Assembly (NCBI GenBank): GCA_030704615.1
Contig: CM060731.1
Span: forward strand, 20,088,001 to 20,152,000
Length of the DNA stretch: 64,000 bases
Direction of reading: 5' to 3'
DNA from: Takakia lepidozioides
Taxonomy: Eukaryota > Plantae > Bryophyta
The notes beneath the pieces were generated by a model that worked only from the letters and a program-made list of their open reading frames with translations, was not told the DNA's origin and made no database searches. The translations under genes were made by a program, and so were the position numbers. Of this stretch, positions 9,265 to 48,200 are shown one piece after another. The first letter of the stretch is position 1. The number at the start of each line of letters is the position of its first letter.

Positions 9265-10023
9265 ATGGAGGAACCGGTCCATCTTATTTGAGCATACTCA
9301 CAACAAGACTCTCATTTAGGGGCACGGGTGCAGCATAAAATGACAACTCCAGCATGGCAGCCACGAGCGATGCAGCCCACAGCTGGACCTCAAGGACAGT
9401 GGCCAGCTCCAGGCACAGTGGCTTACCAGGGACAGGGACCTCCAAGACGCCCTACCTATGGTCCCTCCTCTTCAAAATTTTCCCAATCACCAGAGGGATC
9501 ATTGCCCCCTTTCGGAAACCCCAATCAGCTTGGTGCAGCCTCTGGGAGTGGTCCGCAGCCATCGGGACATCCTGTAAGTTGTTGATTGCTGAGAACTTTG
9601 GTGCGATGTAACAGTTCTATTTGCAATTGTATCTCCTATTTTGACCATGCTAGAGGTCGACCTCCTGGGGTTAATATATCCTAAGCAGGGGTGAATTCTT
9701 CTAGGACTATATCCTTAATTTTTACTAGCTGTGGAATGCAGATGCAAAAAGTTGTTCAGGATTTATCTCGGTGCATAGCAGGCTTAGTCACATCTTCCAC
9801 CACTCCTTTCTTCCAAGAAGAGTGTGCCAGAATCATTGGCTTGCCCCTTGCCGACATTGAGAAGATGGAGTCTTTCATTTGTGATACAATGTCTGAGATT
9901 GTTGAGGACTTAGATAAACTAAAAGCTGGTACAACTGCGGAAGATGAGAGCTCGGGCACATCCGTCTCGGATCATGAAATGGAAGAGGGCAATTACACAG
10001 ATGTTGATGATATTTGTTCATAA
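9265..10023 (+). pseudogene. Possible two-exon orphan gene or pseudogene (Pro/Gln/Gly-rich exon, then helical/acidic exon)
   Basis: Reading frame 9265-9573 has one early TGA and ends at a GTAAGT donor. A CAG acceptor near 9741 leads into MQKVVQDLSRC...DVDDICS*. No family recognised. Confidence 0.35.
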
Positions 10024-10678
10024 TGAGCTTTGAATCAGCTGGAATTATTGTTTACAATCGTTAATCTTCTAGGGTTTACATTTCTTGGTATCAGTGGGTG
10101 CAAACATACGTCCATTTTGGGACATTTGATGTAGAATTTTTGCTGTCTTATTGCATATGGTCCAAGTATGTATGCAATATACAAATTTCTTTTAGGAAGG
10201 TAGAATTCAGGGACATGTTTAAGAATTAAGTTGATACTTGCTATAAGGCATGTGTAAGTAAAGTGTAGGAAAAGTATAGTGCAGGTGGGAGTGATATTGA
10301 TTTAGTTTCCAAGGAATTTTATATCACAGGGAGATTGGGAATTTTGGACGACGTATGCACTGTTCAGAGTTTAAAGGCTTCAACCTTCTAGTATAGGGTG
10401 CAGCGATGTGCCACAAGCTACTTCACCGAATGCTCCTCCAACTGAACTCTATGGTGGACATGAAGTTTTAAGAAACAGTAGAAAAGCACAGATGGAACGT
10501 CACATTTCTCAAATCCATGAACATTGTCATTTTATGTGCAGTTGCAAAATATTCACAACTGTAAGAGACAATCCAAGCTCTTCGGTTTGTCAAGGAAACC
10601 TTTCAGGCAAATACTCACATGAACCAATGGTTGCATAACTGATGAGCTAAAGCTGAAGCTACACACCGAACTAACTGT

Positions 10679-11493
10679 CTAGTTAGATCCCGTCAACGTC
10701 TCCTTCACACTCTGGTACGTATTGTTCAATGCATCACCAGTCTGCAAACAAATCCAGCAAATATCATGTAAAGCACATGAAAAAAGATCGATGCAACTCT
10801 AGCGAGGACTTCTCCTGCTGTCTCTCAATCTTCCGTAGCGTAAGATCCCCCAATGCAAAACCAAATCAGAAGGCGGAAGCGAGGCGGAGATGGTATGTTT
10901 AGATCAGAGAGGAGAGAGCACAGGGTGCTGATTTACGTCAACATCGAAAATGTGCTTGAATGAGAATTATACCTTCTGGAGGAGGTTGCTAGAAGCATCG
11001 GTAGCCTCGGAAGCCTTGTTCTGTGTAGCTTGCGTAGCATCTGAAAGAGCATCCTTAGTTCCGGCGTATGCACTTGAAGCCTTTTCTTGAGTAGCGCCAG
11101 CTACACCTTGAGCTTGCTTCTGGGTCTCGCCAGCACCATTCTGCACGTCAACGGCAACAAACACATCAGCTCATGCTTCTAGAAGTAGAGCCCCCAATCA
11201 TGATCTGGGCAGTAGTATTACGAAAGGCCAGTGAACAGAGATAAGTAAAGATAGGACCAGTGCTCTTTCACGGGGCTGCAAGCACGAACTCATCTTCCCT
11301 CGAAATGGAAATACCTTATGGAACACAACTTACTACACTATTGCAGTCCATCTACATGAGTTCCAGAAACAGAGCAGCTGCAGGTGCACACCTTGGTGGC
11401 GTCCTGGACATCTCCAGCCTTGGACTGGGCATAATCCGCAGTCTCCCCCGTCTTCTGGGCGGCAGTGTTCTTGGTGTCTTCCCAGGTCGACAT
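10679..11493 (-). CDS. Late embryogenesis abundant protein (group 3/LEA_4-like), 110 aa, exons 11493-11392, 11140-10973, 10741-10679
   Basis: MSTWEDTKNTAAQKTGETADYAQSKAGDVQDATK-NGAGETQKQAQG...NLLQK-TGDALNNTYQSVKETLTGSN*. A/T/Q/K-rich repeats, two phase-0 GT-AG introns. Confidence 0.88.
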
Positions 11494-13722: not shown

Positions 13723-15120
13723 AAGACTCACTTGGGTAGATAGAATATCCATCCATATATAGATGAAATATGTAAATAAAAAAATAAACCAAAGGCGCTG
13801 GACTTTGTGTGAACGAGGGTACCTAGTTGTATGCGGCCCCACATGCCTATTGCATGCAAGGCCCACATGCAGTCCATGTGCTAGCTAAGTTTGGCGAAGG
13901 TTGTAGAATAGAGAATATAGGAGCAAAAAATCTAGAATGGAGGGAGCGCGTGAGCAGGCATGTGGGTAGTGCTTCGATAGTTGGGGGCAGGGAGTTCGGA
14001 AAGTTCATCGTTGGTAGTGGAAAAGTGGGCCATTGCAAGGAGGAGGAAAGGAGGCTTGGAAGTGGGCTAGAGGCTTGGCAATAGTTCAGATAGAGGCATA
14101 GGCATGCATAATGCGGCACACACATACACAACATGTGCAGCAAGGGTGGGCCTTGGGTGTACTTTGAAGCTGGATAGTTTTTCATATTTTTTCAAGTGTT
14201 GTATGCAAACATAAGGGTTGGATATACTTCGATACAGGAAGTCTCATGACTTATTTGACAACTTATACTTTTATTATGTCAAATTATTTTTGAATATTAT
14301 GCTTGAAATTAGTTTTGCGACACACTTCTCTATGTTTCAATCTGAAGTTGTATGCCTATGGAACGTTTTTCCGAAGATTGTGAAGTAAATATGTACACAT
14401 TAATCTGGCAAGTGGCACCTTTGTATGGAAAGTATTTTGTTGGATGAAGCCCTAAAATTGCACCGGTACCAAACAATGACGTATCTGTTGACCATATGCA
14501 CCAACTTGACTGGATGAACTACATTTTATTTACACATCTCATAGCCTATACTACATATTCACTCAATAGGCTTAGGGGGCAGTAGCCGTAAGACGAAGTG
14601 GCTCTTAGTTACGCCCGAGTCTTCTCTCTCTCTCTTTTCAGTAGACATCATGTATAGAAGTATATCCAAAGGCTTATGTTTGCATACAACACCTGAAAAA
14701 TATGAAAGCTATCCACCTTTAAAGTACACCCAAGGCCCACCCCTAGGGAATTCCAAAAAGGCCTTGATGTGAAATGCAGCGCAATTCACTTGATCAGATG
14801 CCAATTCAATTGAATTGCGATGCCAATTCAACTGAACTAACCCTAATTTGCAATTCAATTGAATCGCCAGTTGGCAATTCAATTGAATTGTAATCTATAA
14901 TTTTTAACGCAGTTTTGTATATAATATATATAATATATTATCATGTATATGTATATGTATATGTATCGTATACACATATACATACGAGAGTATAAGCTGA
15001 ATATACATGCTGGCCCGTCTATTCCTGCTGCCCGTCCATCCTTTGCTTGTGGTAAGGCCTAAGTCACGACATGAGTCGCGTAGCCTAAAGGAGAGATATA
15101 TACTACACATATATACTAGT

Positions 15121-15368
15121 AGAGGTATCGTCATTAGGTTGTAGCCCTGTTTGATATATCTACAGAGGTATAGTATTTCATTTTACAAGAAAAGTTGGCC
15201 AAATTAATTTATATTTATGCGGAGGTATCGTCATGAGACACTAGCCCTGTTTAGTATACCACCAGAGGTATAGCGCCTGACTTACAAAGAAACCTGGTCA
15301 AATCAGCCTATATGCAGGTTGAGGTATCGTTATGAGGTAGTTGCCCTGTTTAGTATACCTATAGAGGG
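15121..15368. repeat. 100-bp-period subterminal tandem repeat (~2.5 copies)
   Basis: gaggtatcgt(c/t)at..gccctgttt..tata..agagg recurs at ~15122, 15222 and 15321. Confidence 0.85.
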
Positions 15369-15773
15369 ATTGGCAACGTACGCATTCTTATCTCTGTTTT
15401 TATCCCAGTCTCGCTTGTTAGATTCTACAGCTGTTCATCGCGTAGCACTTGGCTACATGATTGTCTATTGTTTCTGGTTTACTCAATAAGAAGAGTGAGA
15501 TAGAAATGTCAAGTGAGTTTTTCATGGTACGTGTCATGGTTGGGTGGACAGGAAGAGGCCAAGGAAGAGGCAGCAGCAGAGCTGACACATTTGGTAAGGC
15601 AACCGTGTCCATCCTGAGTATGAAGGATGCTGCACCCTCGGAAATACAAGATGCTTCAAGTAAGTTCAAAGAGCTTTCTTCTCTTTCTGGTGTGCTGGAT
15701 ATGTATGCGGAGCACAACTAATATCACCTTAGGTGCCAAGGGAGAAACAAACAACCAGACCCTATTTCATTTC

Positions 15774-15804
<31 letters not shown>

Positions 15805-15807
<3 letters not shown>

Positions 15808-17411
15808 TTTCTCCCTGTCCTCTAGGAAGCCTCTTGACATTGGGTGGACTTGAAACGGGAGTACATTAATGTCTGTGTCACTAAATGTCGGCCTTCTGAC
15901 CTCGTGTCCTTGTTTGTTTCGACCTTAAGCGTTTTGCTTCAGGTAAGGTAGTGCATTGGATTTAGTTGGAAAGCTTGGGGCCTTTCCCTCTTTAGAATAT
16001 GCCTACACGGGCCATTCCCTGCAACTCCCTGGAGTGTGATCTCTGAATGGTAACAAGCGGACTCCTACCGCTTGGGGGCAGCCCCTCCGCCCAAATTGGG
16101 CAGTCGTATGCTCTGTCTAGCATACTCGGCATTTGGGCTCGGGTTGGTTCCTGTGCTTAAACTTATGGCCTACGAAAACAATCAAAAATTTAGCTCCTAT
16201 CAACATCAACACTCCTCAGGGTGATCCCTGGGAATTTGTTACTTATGCCAAATCTAGGGCTTCATGTGTAGTTTTTGGGGTGAATCCCAGGATGGACGAT
16301 GTGTCCTTTAAAACTACATGCTCTACCTTAGGCTTGGATTTCATGGTTAATGGTACCATCTCGAGACTTGATAACAGGGGTACGTTGAAGGTTGCAATGA
16401 CCAAAAGTGCTTCTAATAGAGTCCCGCATCAATTCAATCTCAAATAAGTTCGTCCGTGATTTCTTGTTTGACAATTGTGAAATTATCAACAAGGGTTTGA
16501 GGTACGAGCATAGTATCTGGCTAAAACTGAATTTGAAGGGCGGCATGAGCACTCTGCTGGACCTCTTTGCCCGTTGTGTTTACATGCCCACAGAGGGGAC
16601 CCTGTGTGCTGACGCAGACAAGGCCTCACAAGTTTTGAAGCTGGACTGTGCTTCGTTCCTTGCCAAAGGTCAGGTGGTACTATTGGGGGACTTCAATGCC
16701 TGGGTGGGCAAAGGGATCCATCAGGACGATATCATTGGACCTTTTGGTGAGGACGAGCTGAATTCTAATGGCAGACGGTTAATTAACTGTCTAGAAGAGC
16801 TTCAGCTTTTGACCTTGAATAACAGGACAAGAGGTGACCAAGTGCAGTGGACTCGTGGGAAACCCCAAACTGGGGAACGTTCCATTGTGGACTATATCAT
16901 AATGGACAAAATTTTGTTCCCCCAGTGTGCCGATGTGTTGATTGACAGAACTGATATTGGTACCTCTGACCACTTGCTGGTTTGGACTGACATCAAAAGG
17001 TGTTTTCCCACCACCAAGAGATTTGTGAAACGTTCGATTCGGAAGTGGCGCATAGAAAAATTCCACAATGAGGAGGTCAAGGCTGAGTACGTCCAGGCCT
17101 TGCAAGAGGCTCTCCCTCATTTTGTCCAATCGCTCCAAGAACTTCAGTCACGCTCTGTTAACGCAATAAATGAAGTCGAAAGAGCAGTGGACTCTTGGGA
17201 GAGTTTCGTTTCCTCCGTGGCTGACAAGATCATTGGGAGGAAACTAATTGTCTGCGGTAGAGCAGTTAGTTGGTGGACTAATGAGATTAAACTCAAGATA
17301 GCTGAGAGAGGAGCCCTCTATAAACAGTGCTGCAATTTGGAAACCAACAGAGAATTGTGGGCGAGGTACTACCAGCTCCGTAAAGATATCAATCAGCTTG
17401 TTAGGTCTTAG
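15805..17411 (+). mobile_element. 5' part of an RTE/RTEX-like LINE (5'UTR plus AP-endonuclease), 3'-truncated, following a (CT)n tract
   Basis: APE motifs VYMP, VVLLGDFNA, GEDELNSNGRRL, SIVDYII, SDH, then WW..EIK linker. (CT)n at 15777-15804 lies directly upstream. Confidence 0.85.
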
Positions 17412-17621
17412 TAAAAATTATACTGGGACAAGTTATACAGTGAAATAAACTCAAACCACTATGGTGGTAATGACAAGAAATTATGCTTGGCCCTTCAACG
17501 TTTGTAGTCACGCTCTGTAGAGGTATTGAGCACAAGGGGAAGCAATATAACTTGGCATAGGGGCTGATATGGACTTGACATTGATCTTCCATGTGCACAC
17601 CTCTCTCCATGTGCTGCTCAT

Positions 17622-17839
17622 CCACCACTCTACCCACTGCCTGCGTATCGCTGGTTTGACTAAGTGACTGGTCACTAGATCACTAGTCACACCTTCATAG
17701 GAGTGGGCATGTGGCTTGCAAGTGTTGGGCTGCCAATAACAAACCCACTACAACGTTGCACTACAACCATAATCTCATCACTATTGCAGAACTCAGCATT
17801 CATGCTCTCGATTCCCACTCCAGCCTTTCAAATTCCTCA
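17622..17839 (-). pseudogene. Captured fragments of a flavodiiron protein gene (Flv1/FLVA-like)
   Basis: Minus strand 17827-17693 reads KAGVGIESMNAEFCNSDEIMVVVQRCSGFVIGSPTLASHMPTPMK followed by a GT donor (flavodoxin domain). 17663-17622 reads SQTSDTQAVGRVV (start of the flavin-reductase domain). Confidence 0.82.
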
Positions 17840-18569
17840 ACTTCCATTCAGCATCCCATGAACCCCACATGCAGCCCGAGTGTTATTACAAGCACGTTAT
17901 GTGCTTTGGTAAATACTGTTGTTGGAATGAGGCAAAGCCCTCAAACCTTGGCCAAATGTTTATGCAAACCTCCTTAAACTGCTTGTGAGCTAAATGGGTT
18001 TGATGTGCATGCCAGGGTTAGCTCCATCTCATTTTTTGGATGACCCTTTGGGAGACAGATGGCTTACTCAGAAGTGCTTCAGCTTCCTCTGATTCACTGG
18101 CAAAAGAAATATGGCTAGCTCTGAAAGAAACAGACAATTTCAAACCTCACAATTGATGAATGGCTTCCCCTGCATCATCATGTACTCCCCTGGCACTAGT
18201 ATCTGGCCCCCATGACACAACCCCAGAGAAAACAAAAGACATGTTCATTTCGAGAATTATCTCCAATAATCTTGTTTCGATACCCTTACAAAGGTATCAT
18301 GTTGCAATTGGGCTGTGTGTTTGATAGAGAGTTTAATATATCAACTCTTAGACGTTGATACTCTTATAGTGGTATCATGTTTGGTATATGTACATAGCCA
18401 TATATTGGCACTATAAGGGCTTGGCAGTATGAAATTGGTTAGTGTCTCAAGGTGCAGATGAAACATGCTAACATATTTAGATTGTAGCAACACCCACCAG
18501 TCAAACTCATCCTCAGAAGAGATTGATACACAAAAATTTCTCAGGGTCGTTGGTGCGCAGGCTTTTGTC

Positions 18570-18652
18570 AAGGGCTTGATATCATCATCGGTCAACTCAA
18601 AGTCAAAGACATCAAGGTTCTACTTCAATCTCTCCATCTTGTCTGACTTAGG
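18570..18652 (-). pseudogene. Captured aldo-keto reductase C-terminal fragment
   Basis: PKSDKMERLK*NLDVFDFELTDDDIKPL matches the AKR motif IPKS...RLxENxxVFDFELTxED. Confidence 0.75.
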
Positions 18653-18994
18653 ATTTTTATTACTGTATGCAAAATTCTTAGATTATGAATAGAGGGTTCT
18701 TGAAAATGAGGCAAGTTGGTCATCATTGTCTCATATGTGGGGCAGACAAAGATTGTTGGAGATAAAAGCGGCCTCATGAGCCTCACGCTGTGCACTTCCC
18801 AATGAAACCCAACAATTTCACAACCCTCCAGAGATCGTACAACCCAGGCCCTGCCCCCAAGTAGTATGGTTTGATGTTTAGGGTGTATGGTTCAATATGG
18901 ACAATGGATATGATGATGACATTTATTTAACAGAAATCCTCAAAGTACGTGACATAAAATAATTATCTTTGAATGTGATTGTCCACTTATTCAG

Positions 18995-20730
18995 TTAATC
19001 ACAATTACATACAAGAGCTTGTGTAATTAAAAGTTGGAGAGCTTCCCTACTTAACACGGTATTACCAATGAGGTCCAATTGATCAAAATATCTATGTTCA
19101 TGCGTTGCCAAACCACAATACCGAGACATGTAGTAGTGGAGATGAAAACAAGAGATCGAATCCTTCCCAACCTTTCCAATTTCATAAGCTTGTGCACGGA
19201 CACGAACCATGTCAGGAATGAGTTCAGCTCCTTTGGTAGGAAGGTCATGCAAACCACCTGCACATCGCCACCTTTGATTCCCACGAGGCCCCAAGTCTTG
19301 GTTACCAATGTGTCGGGGGTCTTCCCTGAATCGTGGGTCATCAATAAGGTGGCTGGTCCATCTACATGATCAAACACATCACCACATTAGAATAACATTC
19401 CAATGTAAATTGTAGCTTAACAATGAAAGTACAAACAAGAGAAAACCATGAGCTTACCCATGCAAACGTTCATACTCACGAAAGAAACGAGTAGGAACAT
19501 GTGATCGACGATATCGACCGTTTTCATTAATCGTGCGAACTCGATGTCCATTCCAAATCTTCACGTATTCATCAACAGCTTCTTGTAGTATGGGCATATA
19601 TATGTCAATAAAAGATTCTCGTTGCCACGGATCGTCCATATCCAATAATCCATCATTGACCATTGCTTGGAAGCAATTTTTGTAGTAGAACATTACCTTC
19701 TCCCATAGATGCCGCCAAAAGTGTTCAATCCTTAACGTGGTGATTACACCACACAAAGTATTAGGAATATGCACAACATTACACACTCAATGATTAATAA
19801 AGATGAACCAAGAAATATGACAGAAACGTAAAGTTGATATGCAAGATAGAATTGTATAGAACACTAACCTGATTGTGTGTAGAAGACCCAGTCAAGTACG
19901 GATTGGGTGTTTCAGAACGTGTGGCTTCAATGTGTTGTTTAATAAGAGAGTGTTCTACTGCAAAATCAGATCGAATTCGTAAAGGTGCTCCAAACTTGGA
20001 AACTGCATCATGATATCATTTGAAAATGGTTTTTTTTTTCTTGTTTCTTGCAATGTTCGCCCATAAAACAAAATGAGAGGCCCCATCAATGCCAGCATGT
20101 ACTCGAAGACCAAACATAACCAATTTGTCATAAGCTGCACCACGAATTGCACACATGTTTTAGTTTGCCTACAATTTTGTGCGATATGTAATGCAAGAAA
20201 ACGTCTTGCATGTGCATCTTCAAAGAACATTAAGATGCATGAGATAAAATACTTACAGTCAATGTGCCATAGAGCCATAGGCATTGTCACATTATACTGA
20301 GTCCTCCAAATTGCCTGTGCCCTTCTCCTACGCTCATAATGGTAGGGTGAGATGATTTTCAAAGCTTCCCCCACCTTCCTTCGAGGAATCCGCCAATTTG
20401 ACCTCCTTAAGGCAGATTGCACTGTTCTCATTCCCAATTTGTCCCATTCTCTTCAATAGGAAGTAACTCTTGAATCTTTTCACACAAGCGTTGGACACTC
20501 AATTGATGATGAACTTTGAAATGAGACCCTTGGACTTCTGATAGCAATCTTCTCAATGGTCGTACATCATCAAAAGAAAGGGCAGTGGCGATTGATTTCA
20601 TTGTGGCACCCTCATTCAACATTGCTTCCACATAAAGTACTAAATCATCCACTACTTTGTCACCATCCAAATGGTTGTTTTCCATGCTCACATGATCTGT
20701 CTTATCTCTGCTTAATAGCCCCAGTGCCAA
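18995..20730 (-). pseudogene. Decayed intron-containing DDE transposase (IS3EU-like integrase core)
   Basis: GMRTVQSALR..YNVTMPMALWHID / SYDKL..VHAGIDGAS..FGAPLRIRSD..LTGSSTHNQ / RIEHFWR..GLLD..WNGHRVRT. Introns 20256-20135 and 19868-~19734. Frameshift near 20437; in-frame TGA at 20016-20018. Confidence 0.88.
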
Positions 20731-22204
20731 TGCCTTCGACCTTGCCCTTGTTGTAATTGTTTGCTGTTAATTCTGTAGTCACTGCATCCACTCACACACT
20801 CCCCATAGGACTTACGTCACTAAAGTTCACATAGGCTATCAAGTAGATGAACCAAATGTACTTTGAAACAACAACTACTCTATCCTAAAATGTATTAGTA
20901 AACCACAATACACAGTGTGGGCAGGTTGAAGACAAACCATGTGATCAAGCTCTTTCTTTCAGTGTGTGTATTGAGGAGCGTTTGGTAACCCACTCTACTA
21001 CCCCTAAAGTTCTCTCCTCAAAACTCATGAGTCACCTACACGTACACAAGAACTACAGCTTTAGCTAAAATGATATCTTTATCAATGATTGGGGGAACTC
21101 ATGCCAATATGGGAATGTGCTTACTCATGGGCAGATCTTGTCATTTGGTGATCCAAGAAGGCTTCCATCATACATAGCGCCACCACCGCTCAACCCTAAA
21201 CTTGTTGTTGCATTCTTCTCTCGTTACTTCTCGTCCTCCAACTGATTTGATCCTTTCACTTTTAGGGCACTTCTGCCCTAAAAACCCTTCATCACTTCAT
21301 TTCTCTCTCCCTTTCCCTCGCTCTCGCTCTCTCTCTAGTATATATCTCTCCTTTAGGCTACGCGACTCATGTCGTGACTTAGGCCTTACCACAAGCAAAG
21401 GATGGACGGGCAGCAGGAATAGACGGGCCAACATGTATATTCAGCTTATACTCTCGTATGTATATGTGTATATGATATATATATATATACATATACATGA
21501 TAATATATTATATATATTATATACAAAACTGCGTTAAAAATTATAGATTACAATTCAATTGAATTGCAGTCAGCAATTCAATTGAATCGCTCGCCAGTTG
21601 GCAATTCAATTGAATTGCAAATTAGGGTTAGTTCAATTGAATTGGCATCGCAATTCAATCAAATTGGCATCTGATTCAAGTGAATTGCGCTGCATTTCAC
21701 ATCAAGGCCTTTTTGGAATTCCCTACCTGCTGTGCATGTTGTATACGTGTGTGCCTATCCTGTATGCCTCTAGCCCGCTTCCAAGCCTCCGACCTCCTCC
21801 TTGCAATGGCCCCACTGTCCCAATACCAATGATGAATACCAATGATGAACTGTTCAAACTCCCTACCCCAACTATCAAAGCACTACCACTGCCTGCTCCT
21901 ACAGTTCCTCCATTCTAAATTTTTTGCTCCCTCCATTCTAGAACCTTCGCCAAACTTGGTGGCGCATGGATTGCATGTGGGCCTCGCATGCAATAGCTAT
22001 TTGGGGCCACATGCAACATCATCCATACAAGTCCTAGGACGTCGTAGCGCATGTGGTGCATTTTAGTTTTTCAATGATTGGATTACATATTGGTGCTAAT
22101 TTAGGGTTTCATCCAGCACGAGACTTTATATACAAAGGTGCCACCAGGGTTAGTGTATAGAATTGGGGATCCCTTTGCAGCCAATTACTAGTGCTACAGG
22201 GTGT

Positions 22205-24304: not shown

Positions 24305-27300
24305 ATGGCAGAGGGCGGCGTCAATAGCAATGGCTACCTGAATCATGAGGCAGCCCATAAAGCAGCAAATGATTCCGGATTCGGGGAGGACAGGGTGGCA
24401 GAACTTCGTTCCTTGCTAGGGAAAGCGGAGGGGGATGCTTTGCGTATTGTTGGCGTAGGTGCCGGTGCCTGGGGCAGCGTTTTCGTTGCTATGTTGCAAG
24501 ATGCTTTTGGATCCCTGCGCGATTCTGTCCAGGTAGGGGCTTAGTAGTTTCATTGTTTTGCTTGATTCATACTCAAATTTCCAGCCTCTGATGACAGTCA
24601 TGTTTGTATCCTGTCAATCTCTTCGTTATGATCACAGGTAGGGCGTTTTTGCGCTGATACAGGGCGCTGTGTGGATGCAGTGATCTCAGAATTGTCAACT
24701 CTCTGTCTGTCTCACTTCCCTTCTTCCTTCCCTCCCTTTTGTGAAGTACATACACACGTCAGAAAGAGTGGAATGGTCACTTCAGTTTGTGATGGTTTGG
24801 ATTGTCATGTGGTGCAGGTACGGATATGGCGGCGAGCAGGGAAAGCTGTGGACAGAGAAACAGCCGAGCATTTGTTTGAAGTGATAAATGCACGCGAGGA
24901 TGTTCTTCGGCGGCTTATACGTAAGTGCGCATATCTGAAGTACGTAGAAGCGCGATTGGGAGATCGAACACTGTATGCAGACGAGATTCTGCGTGACGGT
25001 TTCTGTATTAACATGGTTGATACCCCTCTCTGCCCTCTCAAGGTGGTAACCAATCTCCAGGAAGCAGTGTGGGATGCCGATGTTGTCATCAATGGTCTCC
25101 CTTCTACCGAGACACGCTCCGTTTTCCGACAAATTGGTCGCATCTGGCGGGACCGTCTCACTATGCCCATAATTATATCATTGGCTAAGGGTGTGGAGGC
25201 TGCACTTCAACCGGTGCCTCATATCATCACTCCCACACAAATGATTGTGGACACGAGTCAGTACTCTGTACCTGTTTCTTCCCACTTTGAACAAGACACA
25301 TAATCTTCAGTGATGAGTATGCTACTCATAGTTTTAGTTGGACCCAGATGTCTTGAAATTGTCAGGTCTTGCCATGTGGTTACCTGGATACCTTCCTTGG
25401 CAATGATAGCCTGGTCGTTGTCTACCTCAACTTTGGGGGGTGGTGCTGACGTGCTGACCTAGTTCAGTAATGCAGTACCTGCTTGAAGGTCAGCAGCTGA
25501 ACACATCCTATTTGGCAAATAGATGAGAGAGATGTGAGATTCTATGCTTGTTTATCGCTCATCCTTAGTTTACTTGTTTGTGGACAGCTGGGGTTCCGGA
25601 AGACAATGTGCTGTATCTAGGAGGCCCAAATATTGCATCAGAAGTATACAACAAGGAGTATGCCAATGCGCGCATCTGTGGGTCAGAAAAATGGAGAAAG
25701 CCCCTCGCCAAATTTTTGCGGCAGCCACATTTTATAGTTTGGGATAACAGTGACCTCACCACCCACGAGGTCATGGGTGGTCTCAAGAATGTGTACGCGA
25801 TGGGCGCAGGCATGTCTCCTTCTGATTGTGTTTATGATGCAACTCTGTAATGAAGCTGATGAATGATCCTAGATGATTTGGATTTACAGTGTTATATAAT
25901 GTTTGAACAGCTTGACTCCCAATTTTCCTTTTTGCAATCATGGAATGATGGTGTCCAATCAGAATAAGAAGCAATCCTTTGTCTTTAATGTAAGCTGAAT
26001 TCAGAGAATGTTGGTTGGAAAATTGTTCTATCCTTGCTGACAAAGATCATAGCCCATAGGACTGCCTTATTGGTTGTGCGGATGTGTTTGTTTACATATG
26101 TGCAAGCTGATTATGGACGCTCACCACTGTAAGAAACTTGTGTATGTGCAGGGATGGTAGGTGCTTTGACAAAAGAGAGTGCCACCAGCAAGGCAGTATA
26201 TTTTGCACTCTGCACATCAGAGATGATTTTCATAACACATTTGCTGGCTGAGCAGCCAGAACGATTAGCTGGCCCACTCCTAGCTGACACTTATGTCACA
26301 CTGCTCAAGGGTCGCAATGCATGGTACGGGGAGAAGCTCGCCAAAGGGGAGCTTACTATTGATATGGGTGATAGCATTACCGGCAAGGGTATGATTCAGG
26401 TCTGTTTTCTCGCCTGAAAGGCTGATTTATGTTCAATATTGTCACATGGGAGGATGGTCATCTCAGCTTATTAACTGTGATCTTCCTACAGCACGTTAGT
26501 TCTAGAGCCTCCTCCTCTTCTCTTGCAGGCTTTTCTTGCAGGTCACCGAATGGATGTTGAGGTGTAGATAAGGTGAAGACATGAAGATCCAGTGAAGACA
26601 TGAACTTTGTAGGATTATTTTCATAGATGGAACAACCATGATGGTTGTCCAATACCCAGGGTTTAGGGTCAAACCTGCTTTCCTCACTTTTTGGCTGTCT
26701 TCAGGACAGTTGAATAATCTGGCAGATCATGGTACGAAAATATAGACTGGAATAGGCTGCTCAGCTAAGAGGGTGAGCATGACGAGCTGAAAGGTGGGCG
26801 ATTTGCTCAAAGCTAGCAGGTGTGCTTTGGTCTGTGGCTGTGTCTCATTACGTTGCCAATGCACGAACGTCCTTACAAAGTAATTCCAGGGTTCACTGTC
26901 TTTGAAGATTCTGGGCCGCAGTCTCTTCTGGAACTTAGAAAGCACAGTATTGAACTCCAGGCATTGGGAAGTTGTTGGGCAACAATCCAATGGTAATCCA
27001 CTGTGTAATTAGCAGAGGTACAGCAGTTTCCTTGTGGGGCCTTAACAACTTGATTGCCTTCGTCTGGTTCTTCTTTGCACTAGGTTCTGAGGACACCTCA
27101 CAATCCGCATGTCAGATGTCTAAACCTGGCCCTGAGTACTTCAGTCTCCAATATGTGAAACAAGAGACGTTACTTCACCCACCCAATATAGGCAGTAAAA
27201 AGCATCAAACGGTAAGTGCTTTACTGTGCAGCTGACTGTGACCACCTAATTGATGCATGCATGATGGTGATTTCAGGGAGTGTCAGCAGTGAAAGCCTTC

Positions 27301-31359: not shown

Positions 31360-31784
31360 CAGTGCTCTAAAGATCACTACGGTGAATACTTTTCACTTGT
31401 TATCAATATTTTTTTCTTTTTCCTTTTTGTTTCTTTTATGAAAAATTTGCCGCATTCTATTGATGGGATCTTTTTACATATTGAGATGATAACTTTTTCA
31501 ACTAAGTTGTGTCATACTTTTCAGAAAAGCTAAATTGATGTGCAAAAGAGAAGCCAAAAGCACACGAGACAAAATGTATATAAGGATCCAATTTTCTATT
31601 GTATTTCACACTTCATCCTTTACTTGTTCTCTTCCTTCTTAGCTCTTGGTCTTTGTTGCTAACATAGTTTGGTAGCTCTTTCCCTCCCTGATTTGGCTTA
31701 CTTGGGGGTAGTGTTGCTCCTCAATAGTTTTAGAATCTAGCTGTTCTCATCAAGTTTGGGGTGTGTAGTCTTATATTGGTGGCA

Positions 31785-32972
31785 ATGGTGATTACTATGC
31801 ATAGTATGATACAAGGTTTGCCGTTGCTTTTGGTGATCTTAGCTTCGGCTTTCAATCCGGTCAAATCAGTTTGTCCATCGGGTGCCGTGTTCATGTTCGG
31901 AGACTCGCTTTCCGACACTGGAAATGATCAACTAGCATTTCCATCGAACCAACAAGTACACCTGAACAAACCTTACGGAGAAACATTTTTTGGACATCCA
32001 GCAGGTCGCTTTTCAAATGGGCGTATTGTCGTTGATTTTGTCGCTCACGCCTTTGGACTACCCTTCCTCACCCCAATTCAAGCATATGTAACAAACCGTA
32101 CCAACTCCAATTTTCGACATGGGATTAATTTCGCTTACGCTGGAGCTACTGCACGAAACGATGACTACTTGGTTCCATATCATCTCGAGCTTCAAGTTGA
32201 ACAATTTTTGGACTTCAAAACCAATGCAAAATCAAAATTGCCAAGAGAAGCGATACCCACTTCAGAAAATTATGAAAATGGATTATATATTATACACGCT
32301 GGGGGCAACGATTTCTCATATCAATATCTTCGACACATGGGACCTACAAAGGTCATGAAACATATTGTGCCTCAATCGGTGGCTGCAGTTTCAGCAGCTA
32401 CAGAGAATTTATACAACGCAGGGGCTAGACATTTTTTCATTTACAACAATCCTGCCGAAGGTTGCTCCACTATTTTCCTCTCAAATTGGGGCACTCCTGA
32501 GGTTTCGAGAGATGAGCATGGGTGTTTGATTCCTTTTAATGAGGTTGTTCTAACCTACAACAAGGGCTTAAAATATATGATTCAAGATCTCCAGCAACGG
32601 CTTCCGGGAATTTCTATTCATTTCGGTCGATATTATGACATCAATGTGGACATTGTGAAGAATCCACAAAAATATGGATTTCCGAAAGAGAATATATTCC
32701 AAGCGGCTTGTGGGTACGGACATCCGTACGATTTCAATTTGGATGCTATGTGCGGAAACATTAACGCAACAGTGGGAGGGAAAGTTGTACGTTTAGATGT
32801 ATATAAATCTAGAGATCCCAACAACTATATTATGTGGGATGGAGTACACTTTACAGAGGCCTTTTACAAGATTATAGCAAAGTCATTTTTGACAGGAGAA
32901 TATTTAGAGCCGCCCACCAATTTCATGGCAGAATGCAAGTTGAACGGCGAATATTTTGCAAAAGGAATGTGA
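31785..32972 (+). CDS. Secreted GDSL esterase/lipase, single exon
   Basis: Signal peptide, FGDSLSDTGN, GRFSNG, NFAYAGA, GGND, WDGVHFTE; uninterrupted ORF. Confidence 0.95.
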   Translation: MVITMHSMIQGLPLLLVILASAFNPVKSVCPSGAVFMFGDSLSDTGNDQLAFPSNQQVHLNKPYGETFFGHPAGRFSNGRIVVDFVAHAFGLPFLTPIQAYVTNRTNSNFRHGINFAYAGATARNDDYLVPYHLELQVEQFLDFKTNAKSKLPREAIPTSENYENGLYIIHAGGNDFSYQYLRHMGPTKVMKHIVPQSVAAVSAATENLYNAGARHFFIYNNPAEGCSTIFLSNWGTPEVSRDEHGCLIPFNEVVLTYNKGLKYMIQDLQQRLPGISIHFGRYYDINVDIVKNPQKYGFPKENIFQAACGYGHPYDFNLDAMCGNINATVGGKVVRLDVYKSRDPNNYIMWDGVHFTEAFYKIIAKSFLTGEYLEPPTNFMAECKLNGEYFAKGM

Positions 32973-39588: not shown

Positions 39589-40599
39589 ATGGAGGCTATG
39601 GCAGCAATGGGTTCGTTGTATCTTCCAAGTCGATCAGTTCTTTCTGCTTCTCTTCTTGGAGGAAAGTCCTCTGAAGTTTCCAGAAATAGAGTTAGTGCCT
39701 CTGTCTCGCTCCGTGCCTCGCAGATTAGTTCAGGTAGATCACGAGCTAGTTTGTCGAGGCGGAAATATTTAGCATTACCGCTTGGTGGATCTTGCGATGG
39801 TTCTTCGAGGAACAGATGCTCTACTAAGAAATTGCAGAGTGCTGCTCGAGCTTCTCAAGACGAGCCGGCATCGGTGGATGCAAAAGTGGACGAGGCTGCG
39901 GACGATCTAGAGAAGGAAGCTGATCAATCCAAGGAAGCTTGGAACAAGGCAGTAGATAACCTCAAGGGAGAAGTAAAAAACCTGCAAGGTTTCTCTGAAG
40001 AATCTGCCACTAGAGCTGCTGAGGTCCTGCGGGATACTACAGAGCAGTTGCTAGAGCAAGCTGAAAAGGCAAGAGCAGTGTTGGCAGCAACGGCACAAGA
40101 AACAGCTGTTCAAGGGAAGTTGAATCTGTCATACGTTGCAGAGAATGCTCCTGATCCCATCAAGGACATTGCTGAAACCGCTCTCTCGGCCCACTACTCG
40201 GAAAACCAAAAGCGTGGCGCCACGATCCATGATTTCTGCCTTGGCATTCCATACGGCGGTCTCCTGGTAGCTGGAGGTCTACTCTGGTTCATAGTTGCAG
40301 GAAGCACATCCGCCATTCGGTTTGGAGTACTTCTGGGAGGACTACTGCTTGCGTTGAGTGTGACCAGCTTGAAGGTGTGGAAGCAAGGCGAATCGTCCTT
40401 GCCGTACATTCAGGGTCAGGCAGCGATTGCATTTATCATCTTTTTCAGGTTCATCCGGAGATATTCAGTAACGAAGGTGTTCTTCCCGACCGGTGTCACA
40501 GCGATTGCCAGTGCTGCAATGTTGGCCTTCTACGCTTATGTGTTCCTGTCTGGTGGGAATCCTCCCCCGAAAGCTAAAAAAACAGAGACGGTAGCTTGA
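39589..40599 (+). CDS. FAX3: Plastid FATTY ACID EXPORT (Tmemb_14) protein, long FAX3-like type, single exon
   Basis: Ser/Arg-rich transit peptide, helical linker, then IHDFCLGIPYGG, four TM segments and GGNPPPK. Confidence 0.85.
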   Translation: MEAMAAMGSLYLPSRSVLSASLLGGKSSEVSRNRVSASVSLRASQISSGRSRASLSRRKYLALPLGGSCDGSSRNRCSTKKLQSAARASQDEPASVDAKVDEAADDLEKEADQSKEAWNKAVDNLKGEVKNLQGFSEESATRAAEVLRDTTEQLLEQAEKARAVLAATAQETAVQGKLNLSYVAENAPDPIKDIAETALSAHYSENQKRGATIHDFCLGIPYGGLLVAGGLLWFIVAGSTSAIRFGVLLGGLLLALSVTSLKVWKQGESSLPYIQGQAAIAFIIFFRFIRRYSVTKVFFPTGVTAIASAAMLAFYAYVFLSGGNPPPKAKKTETVA

Positions 40600-42295: not shown

Positions 42296-45200
42296 TCAAA
42301 ACCCATCGGTCGTGAGCAACCGAATGAGTGCAATGACCACAGGGCTAGACGATATGTCTACAGCCGGCCGTTGAATCTTTTCTAGAAGTAATGCATCTAC
42401 CTTCATGCGCAGCTCCCTTATGAGAACTGCAATGCGCGCCGGAGCTTCGAATTGTAACCAATCATCAACTGTAACTACCTGTCTTTCATGCTTCACCTTA
42501 ATTTCACCACCAAACAAAAGCAAAGCATAAGCCGGCACCATGGTACTCTCTCTCAGAAACACCTTTGAAGTTCTCACTTTCTCTGTAAAAACAAGCCAGG
42601 GACTTTCAAAATATCCTAGAGAGAAATTAACGCTGCCTGGATGTAAAAATACCCGCCCATCTTCCTTCATGAACAATCGAAGCTCATGGGCAGCGGCCGT
42701 TTTTACCACTGTTCCCCCCTCTGTTTGCACATAAGTTTTGTCTGGGTGATGCACACGCACAATGTTGGGATAAAAGCCAGCACAAATCAAGGCTTTCACC
42801 ACACGGATGCTGTTTGCATTTGCATGAAATGGGCTTGCTGCAAGATTGTAGTCTCTTCCACCTTTCACCAATGAATTCCCACTGGCAGTGACTCCTGGAA
42901 GAAATCCAAGATCTACCAGAATTCTCAGGTACTCAGACCGGCTAGCTTCAATAGCAGACAACGTCTCTCTTGACAAGAAGTTTTGGGCACAATACTCACT
43001 CTCGACATTCCAGCCATCTTGCCTTCCACTCACCCATCCATTATATGCAGCTACTACAGCCATATGGTCACTCTTGCTATTTCCTGCAAGCTTCATCCGG
43101 GCAGCAGCAGCTTCCTCACGTTGTTCCATTGGAGAGAGAAAAGGTGAACGCCCACTGAGAGAGGCTGCAATAGTGAGGATAGGGTCAAGGCACTTCAGCA
43201 TGCAAGCGAAGATCAACAGCTTGCCTACCCGTGCATCAACTGGCATCCGTGCCAAGTGTTGACCTAAGGGGGTAAGTCTCTCCCCCTGATCAAGTGCGTT
43301 TAGGTCTTGCAAGCTCTTGAGGGATGACCTGATAGCCTCAGAGGAAGGTGGTGTTAACATCTGGGAGACAATAGCCTCAACTTTTCCTGAAAGTAGAGAT
43401 TTCACCTGCCATAGCCACAGCCAGTCCCATAAAACTCCACAAGTTGTTGCAATACTTGGAATGGAAAATGCACTTGTAAAGGAAGAGCACACCTGGTGAT
43501 AGAATGATATCTAGTGCATCACACAATATAAGTAGTAAGCCACTGGGAATCACTGGGAAGCACTTACCTAGTTCCTCCTTTTGTTCCTGTTTTGGATATC
43601 TCCTTCCACTATTTGAGGGAGTGCCACAACTCTCATACATACAATATATACGCACTCACCAAATCTTATTGCAGACTTGAATCATGTTGGACATTCACAG
43701 AGAAGGAAAGCTGTTATGACAGCAAGAATCAATCTACCAGTTTGGATAAACTCAAATTGGGATTTCTGGGTTCAACAAGGTTGGGCTTGCTGACAAAGAT
43801 CAGACACAAAACCATTACCAAGAGGTTCACCTGTAAGCACAAGCCCTCTAAGGAAACCCGGAGCATTTCTGGTAGTTGTTGCTCTTCAAATTGCTGATAC
43901 TGTTGTCTGCTAAAGAGCCGTACGCAGCAGCCAGGGAGAACCCTTCCAGCACGCCCACATCTTTGCTGTGCATTTGCCTTGGACACCCATGTGTCTTCTA
44001 AGCAAGAGAGACCCCTGTTATGGTCGTACCTCATCTCCTTGTGGCGCCCGCAATCTATCACATACCTGTGTGCAAGCACAAGCAGAAATGTTACCGAACA
44101 TGTGTCTAATAAAGTAACTTCTTTCACATCCAGGCATTTTGCATTGCAAATTGCTTTAACACTGGACTGCTCATCCATGGCCCGAGACTGGTCGACAACA
44201 TAACTGGAATCACCTGGGTCTAGCCAGATGACACTCTGATCGAAAGGAAAAACAGTAACTATGAGCTTAAAGATGCAAAGGAGACGGAGAGAGATATTAC
44301 ACAACATCGTCGATGGTTATACTAGTCTCAGCAATGTTAGTGGCCAAAACAACCTTGCGCACACCAGCAGGGGGCCTCTTGAACACACGCTTCTGCTCCA
44401 CCCCAGACAACGATCCATGCAGGGCCAACACCCACAGACCACCAAGGCTACATGCTGCCATTTGAGTGGATGATTGCAACCGTCTCTGAAGTCTTCGAAT
44501 CTCCAGCATACCAGGGAGAAAGACAAGAATCGCACCAGCTTTGTGCATGTCCCCAGAGTTTGAAGCTAGAGCCCTTCCCTCTGTATTTTCATCACCTTCC
44601 TTGCAGGTAGCAAGAAGGCCATACTTTTCAGATGGCTCTACCTCTTGTTGCAGGATGAAACATATTAGCAGTTCAATCAGCTCAAAATTGATAATACTCT
44701 GATCCACCACACTCAAGGACTGCTTAGTGGCCTCACTGTACATGTCAACGCCTGTGGTCTCTGGATTCTCACGCTCATCAAGCCGACACTCCCAGCTATC
44801 AATCTCTTTGACGAATGAAGAACCACCCTGGCTTGAAGGTAGAGCTGACTCTGAGAGCTCTGTATGGCTGGGTTTCTTTCGCAAAGCGTACCGGGAATTT
44901 CGCCCGACCTTGTAACCTGTCAGCTCTAGTGCATCGTCCAAGTAAAGTTCCCGCACAGGGAATGTGAAACCAGGTATGTTCATCACAGGCGTCTTATACC
45001 CCAGAATCTGTGTGAAGTAGTCAGCGAAGAGGCCAGCATCCACTGTAGCTGACATCAAGATTACACGGAGTGTGTTGTCCCCTCTTGATATCACACCCCA
45101 CACAACCACCCCAAGTCAAATGATTTTTGCTGAAATTCCAGAGGGGTTCCAACAAGTAGCCCTTAATGAGGTTTCCATATGCAGAGTATGCATTTTTGAT

Positions 45201-48200
45201 GCATAAGGCATGTCTCACGTTTCTTTGCTATTGATTGCCAACAATCAGACCCAACATGTAGCCTGGTAAACACCATTCATTCAAATACAGGAGGGGAGGG
45301 AAATAGTCTACCCTACCTTTGTAGAAGCTGCCGCAGGAGCAAGAGGAGAAGGTCACTTTCCAGAGTGCGCTCGTGCACCTCATCAACCAGTACATGGGTC
45401 ACACCATTAAAACCTGGGTCTGATAACAAGCGCCGCAGTAGGATGCCAGTCGTGCAAAACAGCAACCTGGTGCGATGGGACCGGCAACTGTCGAGTCGGA
45501 CTGAGTAGCCCACCTGAAACAGAAAAAGGTCTGCTTACTCTTTGCACTGAGTTCTTCTGGCCCTTACCATGTTGCAGGCAAGATAGCAGACCATGATCAT
45601 GGTCCACCGTAATCATAAATTAGACTTGGAGCCGCGCTTACAATCACCTGTACTTGCAGAAGCATTGAGGGAGTGGGTTGGGCAAAAGTATTTTTGGAAA
45701 ACGATAGAATAGTGTTTTCACCAAGAGTATACTATCATTTACAGTTTTAATCAAGTGAATCAAAGAAATTTGTTCAAACTGGAGGAAAGAATTAAAGAAA
45801 AAATGTTAATATTATGCATGGTCTGTCCAAACCTACGAGAGGTTTAAGACCACAATACCCTGATCCCAAACCCTGTTTGGACAAAGCAGAAGGATAGCAG
45901 CAAGACAGCAGCACCCAGAAACATACGGGATCCGCAGATCAAACAAGAAACTCACAGTAACACCAACAACTTGGCCTCTTTCCTTTGCCACACGATCAGC
46001 CAACCCAATGGCAGACAGCCTCCTTGGCTGTGTGCATACGATATTGCATTCTCCCCCTTTGCCTAGTTCAATAAAATCCTCCAGAACATACTGTGGTACC
46101 TGTAGATCATTGTTACTGTTCCCATTAATGTGCCGAGAATGCTTTGCCAGGCAAATACAGCTGCTATTAAATATGATGCTTGGAGAGATCCATATATACC
46201 TAAGATTCTAGTAATTGCAAAATTCCCACATGGGTCCCCACCTCTTGGCTAAGTACACAGTCACTCATTAGAATGCTCTGGCCTTGGTCATTGGCCGAAG
46301 TACTAGAAATCAAAACATTTCTATCCACATAAATACAACAACAATAATCCAAGGCCATCCATCATCTTGTTATTCTTCACAGAACATTGACTGACTGCAA
46401 GAAATCTTATCCAAAATAGAATCTCACAAGAATTGTAAGCATGCGAGAAGCTAGACGTGGTCAGAAAGAGGTGACACATACCTGTGTACTTTTCCCACAG
46501 CCTGTCTGACCACACACAATGGTAACAGAAGAACCATTAAATGCTTGTAGCAGATCACCCCTCTTCTTGTATGCAGGCAACTTTTCCCTGACCCCACGCA
46601 TCTCAGCATGCCTTGCTGACTTTTGCCATCCCTCCCACTCATCCTTCAACCTCACACTCTCCAGGAAACTATCAGCAGCACCCTTTCTAGACAGCTCCAT
46701 GGTTGTAGCTCCTGATGCACTTTCCTCTACTTTTGTTTGTGCCTGCGTAAGTCTCCCGGTGTCTGCGTATGTGTCTGTGTCCATGCTTTTCTGCCATGGT
46801 GTCTGTCGTAACCCACCTCCTTGCTGCAGGTCTGACACTTTGTTGACCTGGAGTTTCCTCAGTGCTGGGGGTACATAAATTACAGCAGGATTACAAGGTG
46901 AACTTATGGCTTTGCTGTGAGGTGTAGAAGCCGTTGTTAACTCCACACTGTCTGGATGTGTAGAAAATTGTTCAGGACCCAAAACATTGTCTAGCACACC
47001 CAATTCCATCTCCAGACTGCTTTCAGGCCTTAAGTCCTCATCAAGGGAAAAATTGGCTGCTGGCAAATCATCAGGAGTACTCCCATACTCAAGCAGCAGC
47101 AACTGTCCCACATCAGTGGCTGAGCAAACAAGGTCATAGAGCATAGGTGCACCCACCAGTTGCAATGCACATTCTCCCACCTTTCTGGTCAGCTCTAGCA
47201 GAAATTCTGAGGGAAATTCCTTACTTTGAAAGGCTATGATTGGGATCTCATAGGGATAATGGCACCCAGGAGGTAGTCTCACCTGCATGTACAGTGACAG
47301 CAGTCTAATAAGATTCTCTGTTTCGAACATCTTGCGAGAGAGCTAATCATTTCGTGGATGATTAATCCCCCTCTACGGAACAGATTTTGAATGGCTCCTA
47401 GACCAACAATGTCAATTGTGAGTAGCCACCTCTGCAACATTGAGGTAATCACTGCAAGCTTCCATCTGCACCGGCATTCTTGCCTCCTTGTGTTAAGCCT
47501 CTTACATATCCAAGTGCGTTGCAGCATTAGCCAGCAATAAAGGCCCGGAATTGATGCATCCAATGCATCAATGAGTGACCTCGAGTAACATCCCAGGCAC
47601 ATTGGGTTTTCATCTTTTTTACACCTCAACTGCTGCATTTGGATTTTAAACAGGTCGTTCCTGAATACAATTTTACCGTTGTGCTTTGGCTAACAATGTC
47701 ACCTAAAGCTCTGAATTTCTAATGGGCTTGTAGTCTCAACAGGCCAACCATATAACAGCAGCATTATCATAGGCAATCATTGGTAGGGCTCTCTATGGGG
47801 TCCTAAGAGTCACATAAGCCTTATCAACCAACATATATAAGGTTGTGCCCAACCCAATGGAAAATTCCCAGGAGCATCCACAGTTCAATTCTTGTGCGCA
47901 CAACATTGTCCAGCAGGCAGTCAGCATGCCAGCACCAGCCTCCCACCATGATCAATAAGGACATGTAACAGCTTACGACAGGTTAAAAGTACGAAGAAGG
48001 GGGAGGAAGAAAAGAAGGCTTACCTCCATGTCTAGTGGCACTTCATTGTTGTCTTCAAAAGATATCTCAAATTTCAGAAAATTTTCTGATAAAGAGATGT
48101 TTTCTTCTCCAAAGATGGACTGGAGGGCCACCACTTCTTCGGTTCTCATATCCGCAAGCTCTTCATTGGTCTCACTCACATCACTTTGGCACGACTCAAG

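Follow-up and report, generated by a model that had tools for sequence, protein, structure and literature searches.

GingerRoot and IS3EU elements

Transposons of the IS3EU/GingerRoot superfamily end in 5′-TA..TA-3′, occasionally in TG..CA, and duplicate 6 bp of their target, rarely 7–8 bp. Their integrase core is not flanked by HHCC zinc-binding or GPY/F motifs, which separates them from Ginger1/2 and from Gypsy integrases. To our knowledge, the superfamily is restricted among plants to bryophytes and lycophytes. GingerRoot was described in 2019 in Selaginella and bryophytes (Cerbin, Wai, VanBuren & Jiang, Genome Biol Evol, PMC6839031), and GingerRoot and IS3EU form one lineage with 99% bootstrap (Kojima 2023, PMC10045372). 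Published GingerRoot elements measure 3.9–12.9 kb, and those of Selaginella carry terminal inverted repeats (TIRs) of 100–150 bp; an element is counted as ‘intact’ only if it shows a target duplication of 6–8 bp. Gene fragments were found in 22 of the 77 intact Selaginella elements (29%), 6 of these 22 having retained the DDE (PMC6839031).

A single insertion bounded by long inverted repeats

We examined a 64-kb stretch of bryophyte DNA, referred to as the window, which contains a 6,982-bp element at 14744–21725. This element is very probably a dead GingerRoot/IS3EU cut-and-paste copy, inserted as one unit in an older dispersed bryophyte repeat. Its ends and surroundings are organised as follows:

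14643–14743, no strand: left flank, a piece of the older repeat, whose inverted paralogue at 13826–14244 is uninterrupted
14744–15105, plus strand: left TIR, 362 bp, with tip TAGGGAATTCC, three copies of the 14-mer AATTCAATTGAATT and a (TGTATA)n tract
15122–15367, plus strand: subterminal tandem repeat, 2.5 copies of a 99-bp unit with 73% matches
21336–21725, minus strand: right TIR, 390 bp, with tip ..GGAATTCCCTA and four copies of the palindromic 14-mer
21726–22144, no strand: right flank, where the same older repeat resumes

Complementarity between the two TIRs reached 100%, 93% and 98% in the three aligned blocks, or ~90% when gaps were counted, and their outermost 50 bp were exact complements. 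Both the lengths (362 and 390 bp) and the tips, TAGGG..CCCTA, agree with the original prediction, and the tips fit the TA..TA termini of the IS3EU/GingerRoot superfamily. The terminal 38-mer was present at two sites in the 64 kb, which are the two element ends (expected 0), and the seven copies of the palindromic 14-mer were confined to the TIRs (expected 0.02). The transposase would bind these repeated palindromes in the long TIRs and would cut at the TA..TA tips. The tandem repeat, for its part, was found on the left side of the element only. In JGI metagenome contigs, a single match to the TIR tip (L001, n = 1) was set aside as chance or unrelated, since similarity ended beyond the 20-mer.

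The flanking segments 14643–14743 and 21726–22017 abut in the inverted paralogue 13826–14244, with a 2-bp overlap, ‘CC’. The element boundaries are fixed by this paralogous empty site; as the paralogue is devoid of the element, the 6,982 bp therefore entered as one unit. Judged from its flanks, 14744–21725 is thus one mobile unit inserted in an older repeat. The 6-bp target-site duplication was absent: CACCCC borders one end of the element and CCTGCT the other, and alignment with the paralogue gives 2 bp only. This may result from erosion or from an atypical insertion. The superfamily assignment rests on transposase and termini, and the copy would not count as an intact element in the sense of PMC6839031.

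The lack of a matching 6-bp duplication at the two ends would also suit a resident locus that happens to lie between two independent solo TIRs, or two MITEs, belonging to a single family, with an interior that was never mobile. This arrangement is extremely improbable, as the flank sequences adjoin in the paralogue with their 2-bp overlap, making all 6,982 bp insertion, and the cognate GingerRoot transposase gene sits in the interior. The original prediction had itself raised two MITEs around a resident locus as an objection, which is contradicted by the contiguity of the flanks in the empty site.

A four-exon transposase gene carrying three lesions

The minus-strand transposase gene extends from 20685 to 18995, and its four exons would encode ~445 aa:

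20686–21335, minus strand: upstream region, between the ATG and the right TIR
20257–20685, minus strand: exon 1, from the ATG at 20685 to ..ALWHID, with the first D (tblastn)
20256–20135, minus strand: intron 1, GTAAGT..CAG
19869–20134, minus strand: exon 2, SYDKLVMFGLRVHAGIDG..RIRSDFAVEH..TGSSTHNQ, with the second D (Pfam rva_4, tblastn)
19458–19732, minus strand: exon 3, RIEHFWRHLWEKV..WNGH.., with the catalytic E (Pfam rva_4, E 9.4e-14; homologues)
19457–19362, minus strand: intron 3, GTAAGC..TAG
18995–19361, minus strand: exon 4, 121 codons followed by the stop codon; splicing keeps it in frame with exon 3

The DDE motifs WHID, GIDG, RSD, HNQ/RIE (split between exons) and WNGH are all present, with introns between the coding pieces. 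Three of the pieces matched Pfam rva_4 at collinear profile positions, in support of the intron-containing DDE transposase that had been predicted here. The exons were searched singly, and in tblastn 150 homologues landed on these same blocks. No other Pfam domain was detected in the N- or C-terminal exons. Pfam also revealed no HECT domain in the 7-kb copy, a search that divergent remnants could escape.

The gene is not intact: it carries a 1-nt frameshift in exon 1, at the G-run 20435–20433, and an in-frame TGA in exon 2, at 20018–20016. In addition, the sole AG acceptor of intron 2 upstream of exon 3 produces a +1 shift, with no acceptor available in frame. Because of the frameshift, the stop and the defective acceptor, the gene is dead, and by this reading of its exons the copy can no longer produce transposase.

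A candidate cis-prenyltransferase fragment at 18998–19369 (minus strand), suggested by weak PDB matches (E 0.04–1.1), was rejected because three related elements keep this stretch immediately behind exon 3 and its splicing preserves the frame. It is actually transposase exon 4, conserved immediately after exon 3 in L002, L004 and L005, the last from Ceratodon. The stretch found no match in a set of 5.8 billion proteins and showed low recognition in the Atlas. No clear TIRs were seen around relatives L004 and L005, and the window holds no further GingerRoot coding sequence.

Assignment to the GingerRoot clade

The core was compared by eye with the published Selaginella GingerRoot rows SL_GR-005, -009 and -020 and with IS3EU-1. 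In this by-eye comparison, LWHID-S-YDKL corresponds to LWHMDSYDKL in Selaginella GingerRoot, RIRSDFAVEH to RVRSDFAMEH and TGSSTHNQRIEHFWRHLWEKV to TGSSTHNVKIEAFWRHLYEKV. The nearest named relatives are a Ceratodon purpureus ‘Integrase core domain-containing protein’, from a moss, and a protein of the liverwort Calypogeia. These motifs and relatives, with the rva_4 matches, place the transposase among the integrase-type DDE enzymes of the plant GingerRoot clade, in the IS3EU lineage. Transposase and TA..TA termini thus agree on the IS3EU-type, TIR-bounded DNA transposon that had been proposed. The motif set had also been held not to represent a characterised land-plant family; the transposase belongs to a known plant superfamily, GingerRoot, in print since 2019 (PMC6839031), an outcome that the original prediction had itself named as counting against it. 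The bryophyte host agrees with the plant range of the superfamily. Elsewhere in the window, a host FAX3-like protein gave top matches in liverworts and Sphagnum, with 53–62% identity.

Internal DNA

Between the left TIR and the transposase gene, the interior at 15106–18994 (3.9 kb) is not conserved with relatives. Beyond the subterminal tandem repeat it comprises:

15368–16300, no strand: internal DNA with a (TC)14 microsatellite at 15777–15804 and no protein-family or RNA-family match
16300–17410, plus strand: LINE fragment, ORF2 endonuclease domain and linker (start approximate)
17411–18544, no strand: internal DNA, negative in Pfam, PDB and Rfam
18545–18660, minus strand: aldo-keto-reductase (AKR)-like scrap (coordinates approximate), ..PKSDKMERLK, a stop at 18620–18622, then NLDVFDFELTDDDIKPL..

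A stop-free frame of 336 codons on the plus strand, 16401–17408, matched the Pfam families Exo_endo_phos_2 (E 7.3e-7) and Exo_endo_phos (E 0.0015), and the N-terminal part of the endonuclease probably lies upstream in another frame. Downstream of this ORF, neither Pfam nor a reading of the sequence revealed a reverse transcriptase domain, a 3′ end or a poly-A, as expected for the half LINE that had been announced; nor was a LINE target duplication visible. A normal LINE insertion keeps its 3′ end and poly-A, that is, it leaves the opposite pattern after target-primed insertion. Because the endonuclease comes without reverse transcriptase and poly-A, the piece is, on its domain content, an internal or 5′ fragment and not a standard nested insertion. 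The same opposition of patterns indicates that it was either acquired or derived by deletion: the 5′ half of the LINE ORF2 would have been taken up as a fragment, or would be the remnant of a later deletion.

Apart from the LINE ORF, all stop-free ORFs of at least 45 aa in 15106–18994 were Pfam-negative, and Rfam and tRNA scans of the interior gave nothing over noise. For the AKR-like motif (16–27 aa), nine of nine PDB matches were AKRs, each of them sub-significant (E 0.4–2.1), and they fell at the homologous C-terminal site, residues ~241–257 of ~277. The upstream PKS..ER motif presumably resembles an AKR signature. Extension of the scrap into neighbouring pieces or exons gave no matches. 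It appears to be the only candidate host-gene fragment in the element. The predicted fragments of unrelated host genes are therefore for the most part unconfirmed: one candidate is exon 4 and the other is this sub-significant scrap.

Capture or decay

The original prediction saw in this locus a Pack-type, actively gene-capturing IS3EU-like family, whose 3.9 kb of host-gene pieces and LINE would make it an exon-shuffling vehicle. Indeed, a LINE 5′ half deprived of its 3′ end suits acquisition better than nested retrotransposition, an AKR-like scrap is present and Selaginella GingerRoot elements carrying pieces of genes have been documented (PMC6839031). However, no cargo ORF other than that of the LINE belongs to a Pfam family, the cis-prenyltransferase-like stretch is a transposase exon, and the AKR matches are singly non-significant with adjoining pieces blank. 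We consider such active capture rather unlikely. Should it hold nonetheless, it would repeat what is already in print, fragment carriage having been published for 22 of 77 Selaginella elements (PMC6839031), so that a gene-capturing family is not a new proposal. Moreover, the copy retains a broken transposase gene and is therefore not Pack in the usual sense.

Alternatively, a decayed autonomous GingerRoot may have gained its extra DNA entirely by later nested insertions and deletions and by no capture at all, the LINE having lost its 3′ half and the AKR motif being due to chance. We regard this as a serious possibility, if somewhat short of even. The element is mutated already, the AKR evidence is sub-significant and the remaining interior has no recognisable content, in keeping with decay, but the LINE frame, still open over 336 codons, leaves little time for a large secondary deletion, and neither a LINE target duplication nor a poly-A remnant accompanies it. 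The interior 15106–18994 may be ‘cargo’ or may be typical of the family.

The LINE and AKR-like content appears to match the documented fragment carriage of GingerRoot and would not constitute a new exon-shuffling system. That this GingerRoot lineage, in a bryophyte, takes up foreign DNA, here the 5′ half of a LINE and an AKR exon, and moves it, and in addition inserts with a non-canonical duplication of 2 bp in place of 6 bp, seems improbable to us. If true, Pack-like GingerRoot behaviour would reach from Selaginella to bryophytes, with a hint of variant integration geometry.

Significance

The main value of this analysis is a correction: IS3EU-type elements of land plants are GingerRoot, known since 2019, including their carriage of gene fragments. 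The element itself raises no new question. For annotation, the gain is threefold: a four-exon transposase model that assigns 18995–19361 to a conserved C-terminal exon rather than to captured host DNA, the palindromes of the long TIRs as candidate binding sites for the transposase, and the record of a copy lacking the canonical 6-bp duplication.

Comparison with known systems

Like Pack-MULEs and other fragment-carrying plant TIR elements, the element holds foreign, non-transposase DNA between its TIRs. It differs from Pack-MULEs in superfamily and in its four-exon, mutated transposase gene, a gene that Pack-MULEs do not possess. Moreover, Pack-MULEs contain clear host exons with known parental loci, whereas the host-like content here amounts to one sub-significant AKR-like scrap.

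With IS3EU of animals and fungi (Repbase), it shares the motifs WHxD, GxIDGxSR, RxRxD and HNQRIE..W, the TA..TA termini and the Pfam rva_4 integrase core. The plant clade differs by A-x-EH after the second D, in place of G-x-EN in animal IS3EU, and by S-YDKL after the first D. The usual 6-bp duplication of IS3EU was not seen in this copy.

The last comparison is with GingerRoot of Selaginella lepidophylla and bryophytes. The TIRs of 362 and 390 bp exceed the 100–150 bp of Selaginella, the 6–8-bp target duplication is missing, and the sole solid foreign piece is a LINE and not a host gene. Otherwise, the element is equally a TIR-bounded DNA transposon with TA..TA tips in a bryophyte host, its length of 6,982 bp falls inside the published range of 3.9–12.9 kb, its core blocks agree, by eye, almost residue for residue with SL_GR-005, -009 and -020, and, as in GingerRoot, foreign sequence is carried internally.

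Terminal inverted repeats and insertion site

The element at 14744-21725 is a broken, well-bounded GingerRoot/IS3EU copy of an already known kind. The inverted repeats described in the original prediction are real: 14744-15105 and 21336-21725 (362 and 390 bp) are complementary in three blocks (100%, 93% and 98%), reach about 90% complementarity across 390 gapped columns and are identical over their outermost 50 bp. The tips of these terminal inverted repeats (TIRs) read TAGGGAATTCC..GGAATTCCCTA, and the terminal 38-mer occurs at only two sites in the 64-kb window, both of them TIR ends (chance expectation 0). A perfect palindrome, AATTCAATTGAATT, is present in three copies in the left TIR (14803-14889) and four in the right (21552-21643), with no copy elsewhere in the 64-kb window (0.02 expected); these repeats may represent transposase-binding sites. 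Local BLAST with the whole window as database gave just low-complexity (TA)n matches for 21491-21529 and its mirror in the left TIR. Next to the left TIR lies a 99-bp subterminal tandem repeat of 2.5 copies (15122-15367) that has no equivalent beside the right one. A metagenome scan with the 20-nt tip found an exact match in one contig (JGI Ga0116226_10082487, 1660-1679), preceded by 'T'. Similarity stops after the 20-mer, with none beyond, and the match is probably due to chance, a distant family sharing the same tip being a possible alternative.

On both sides, the element is bordered by pieces of one older repeat, and a copy of this repeat could be used as a paralogous empty site. This uninterrupted copy, at 13826-14244, is matched in inverted orientation by the left flank (14643-14742) and by the right flank (21766-22017), and pairwise and MAFFT alignments place the flanks next to each other on it. 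The junction reads GGCCCACCCTTGCTGCAC in the paralogue, and at the filled site GGCCCACCCC and CCTGCTGTG stand to the left and right of the element. Compared with the older repeat, the entire 6,982 bp are hence inserted DNA; the contiguity of the flanks also removes the scenario, considered in the original prediction, of two MITEs around a resident locus. In the same alignments the flanks overlap by 2 columns only ('CC') and the 6-mers beside the element, CACCCC (left) and CCTGCT (right), differ from each other. The site thus lacks the 6-bp duplication that the superfamily would be expected to make, because of either erosion or atypical insertion.

The older repeat forms inverted partial copies around the element (13826-14464, 14643-14742 and 21766-22144; identity 79-88%), and its piece order, B'-A'-C' versus A-B-C, is not that of a simple inversion; it may itself be a MITE or a tandem unit. 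The element is located in a gene-rich stretch of the window. The best matches of the host FAX3-like protein encoded there are in liverworts and Sphagnum (53-62%), which marks the genome as that of a bryophyte with no closely related named species in the database searched.

Genes in the surroundings of the element
24671-25303: glycerol-3-phosphate dehydrogenase exon
31761-32972: GDSL lipase, single exon
39589-40599: FAX3-like TMEM14 protein
42296-48671, minus strand: DEAH helicase with UBA and RWD domains

Transposase gene

The gene model was built from minus-strand three-frame reading, tblastn with 150 homologues and inspection of splice sites, the exons being searched individually.

Transposase gene model, minus strand
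20685: start codon ATG
20685-20257: exon 1, ending in ..ALWHID
20256-20135: intron 1, GTAAGT..CAG, phase 1
20134-19869: exon 2, S-YDKLVMFGLRVHAGIDG .. RIRSDFAVEH .. TGSSTHNQ
From 19868: intron 2, GTTAGT
19732-19458: exon 3, RIEHFWRHLWEKV .. WNGH ..
19457-19362: intron 3, GTAAGC..TAG
19361-18995: exon 4

The predicted product would be about 445 aa long. Three pieces of it match Pfam PF24764 (rva_4, integrase core) collinearly, at profile positions 17-52, 56-104 and 100-173. Exon 4 looked at first like a cis-prenyltransferase fragment, which was rejected because the same sequence lies 3′ to exon 3 in three related elements: in a Logan contig of SRR15511185, in ENA contig ERZ25073694 ctg131066, and on the Ceratodon purpureus V chromosome (CM026426.1; 38.9% over 108 aa).

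The transposase gene is dead. Comparison with the SRR15511185 contig revealed a 1-nt frameshift in the G-run 20435-20433, and an in-frame TGA (20018-20016) falls within the conserved core. The sole AG ahead of exon 3 leads to a +1 shift, which suggests an acceptor defect in intron 2.

The Logan contigs of SRR15511185 (1-2421) and SRR15511193 carry a related GingerRoot transposase (exon 3 identity 67%), with introns 1 and 2 removed via shifted junctions, the third intron kept and an in-frame stop. This looks like the transcript of a decayed relative from another organism. The relatives in the ENA contig (9362-11010) and in Ceratodon (9451-10910) have the same exon order, exon 4 included; intron 2 is missing in the former and present in the Ceratodon annotation. 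Neither has clear TIRs within 10 kb on each side.

Other DNA inside the element

Beyond the TIRs and the transposase gene, the element comprises 15106-18994 and 20686-21335. A 336-codon open frame (16401-17408, plus strand) bears a LINE endonuclease domain, and neither reverse transcriptase nor poly-A was found 3′ to it, in agreement with the half LINE originally proposed. This fragment is the one solid foreign piece within the element. Since target-primed insertion retains the 3′ end and shortens the copy from the 5′ side, a 5′-half LINE is no simple nested insertion: it would have been taken up as a fragment or trimmed by later deletion.

Every other interior stop-free ORF of at least 45 aa was negative in Pfam, and Rfam and tRNA scans of the interior were empty. 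The sole host-like trace there, at about 18545-18660 (minus strand), reads ..PKSDKMERLK, a stop, then NLDVFDFELTDDDIKPL.. and resembles aldo-keto reductase (AKR). The 25-aa piece past the stop hit nine PDB chains, all AKR and at the homologous C-terminal site, each with E of 0.4-2.1; the adjoining pieces had no matches. An AKR origin of the trace is somewhat favoured. With this as its only host-like component, the proposed mosaic of unrelated host genes is mostly unsupported.

Family assignment

The transposase core was compared by eye, not by tree, with the supplementary alignment of Kojima 2023 (PMC10045372), which includes published Selaginella GingerRoot transposases (SL_GR).

By-eye comparison of transposase motifs
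Element LWHID-S-YDKL; SL_GR-020 LWHMDSYDKL
Element GLRVHAGIDGASH; SL_GR-005 GIRIHGAIDASSH
Element RIRSDFAVEH; SL_GR-009 RVRSDFAMEH
Element TGSSTHNQRIEHFWRHLWEKV; SL_GR-005 TGSSTHNVKIEAFWRHLYEKV

With an E cut-off of 1e-3, a full-library search gave only 185 relatives. The nearest were short fragments with 56-69% identity; those named were a Ceratodon purpureus 'Integrase core domain-containing protein' and Calypogeia fissa.

The structural part of the original prediction, a bounded IS3EU-type element, largely stands, and its host-gene mosaic is mostly unsupported. Its claim of novelty was wrong: GingerRoot is known from Selaginella lepidophylla and bryophytes, with gene fragments in 22 of 77 (29%) intact Selaginella elements (Cerbin et al. 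2019, PMC6839031), and forms one lineage with IS3EU (bootstrap 99%; Kojima 2023, PMC10045372). What is noteworthy here is the absent duplication together with the 5′-only LINE fragment. Published GingerRoot elements have TIRs of 100-150 bp with TA..TA tips (rarely TG..CA), are flanked by a 6-bp duplication and encode an integrase-related DDE transposase (PMC6839031). In contrast, the present element is without that duplication, and its TIRs measure 362 and 390 bp against the published 100-150 bp.
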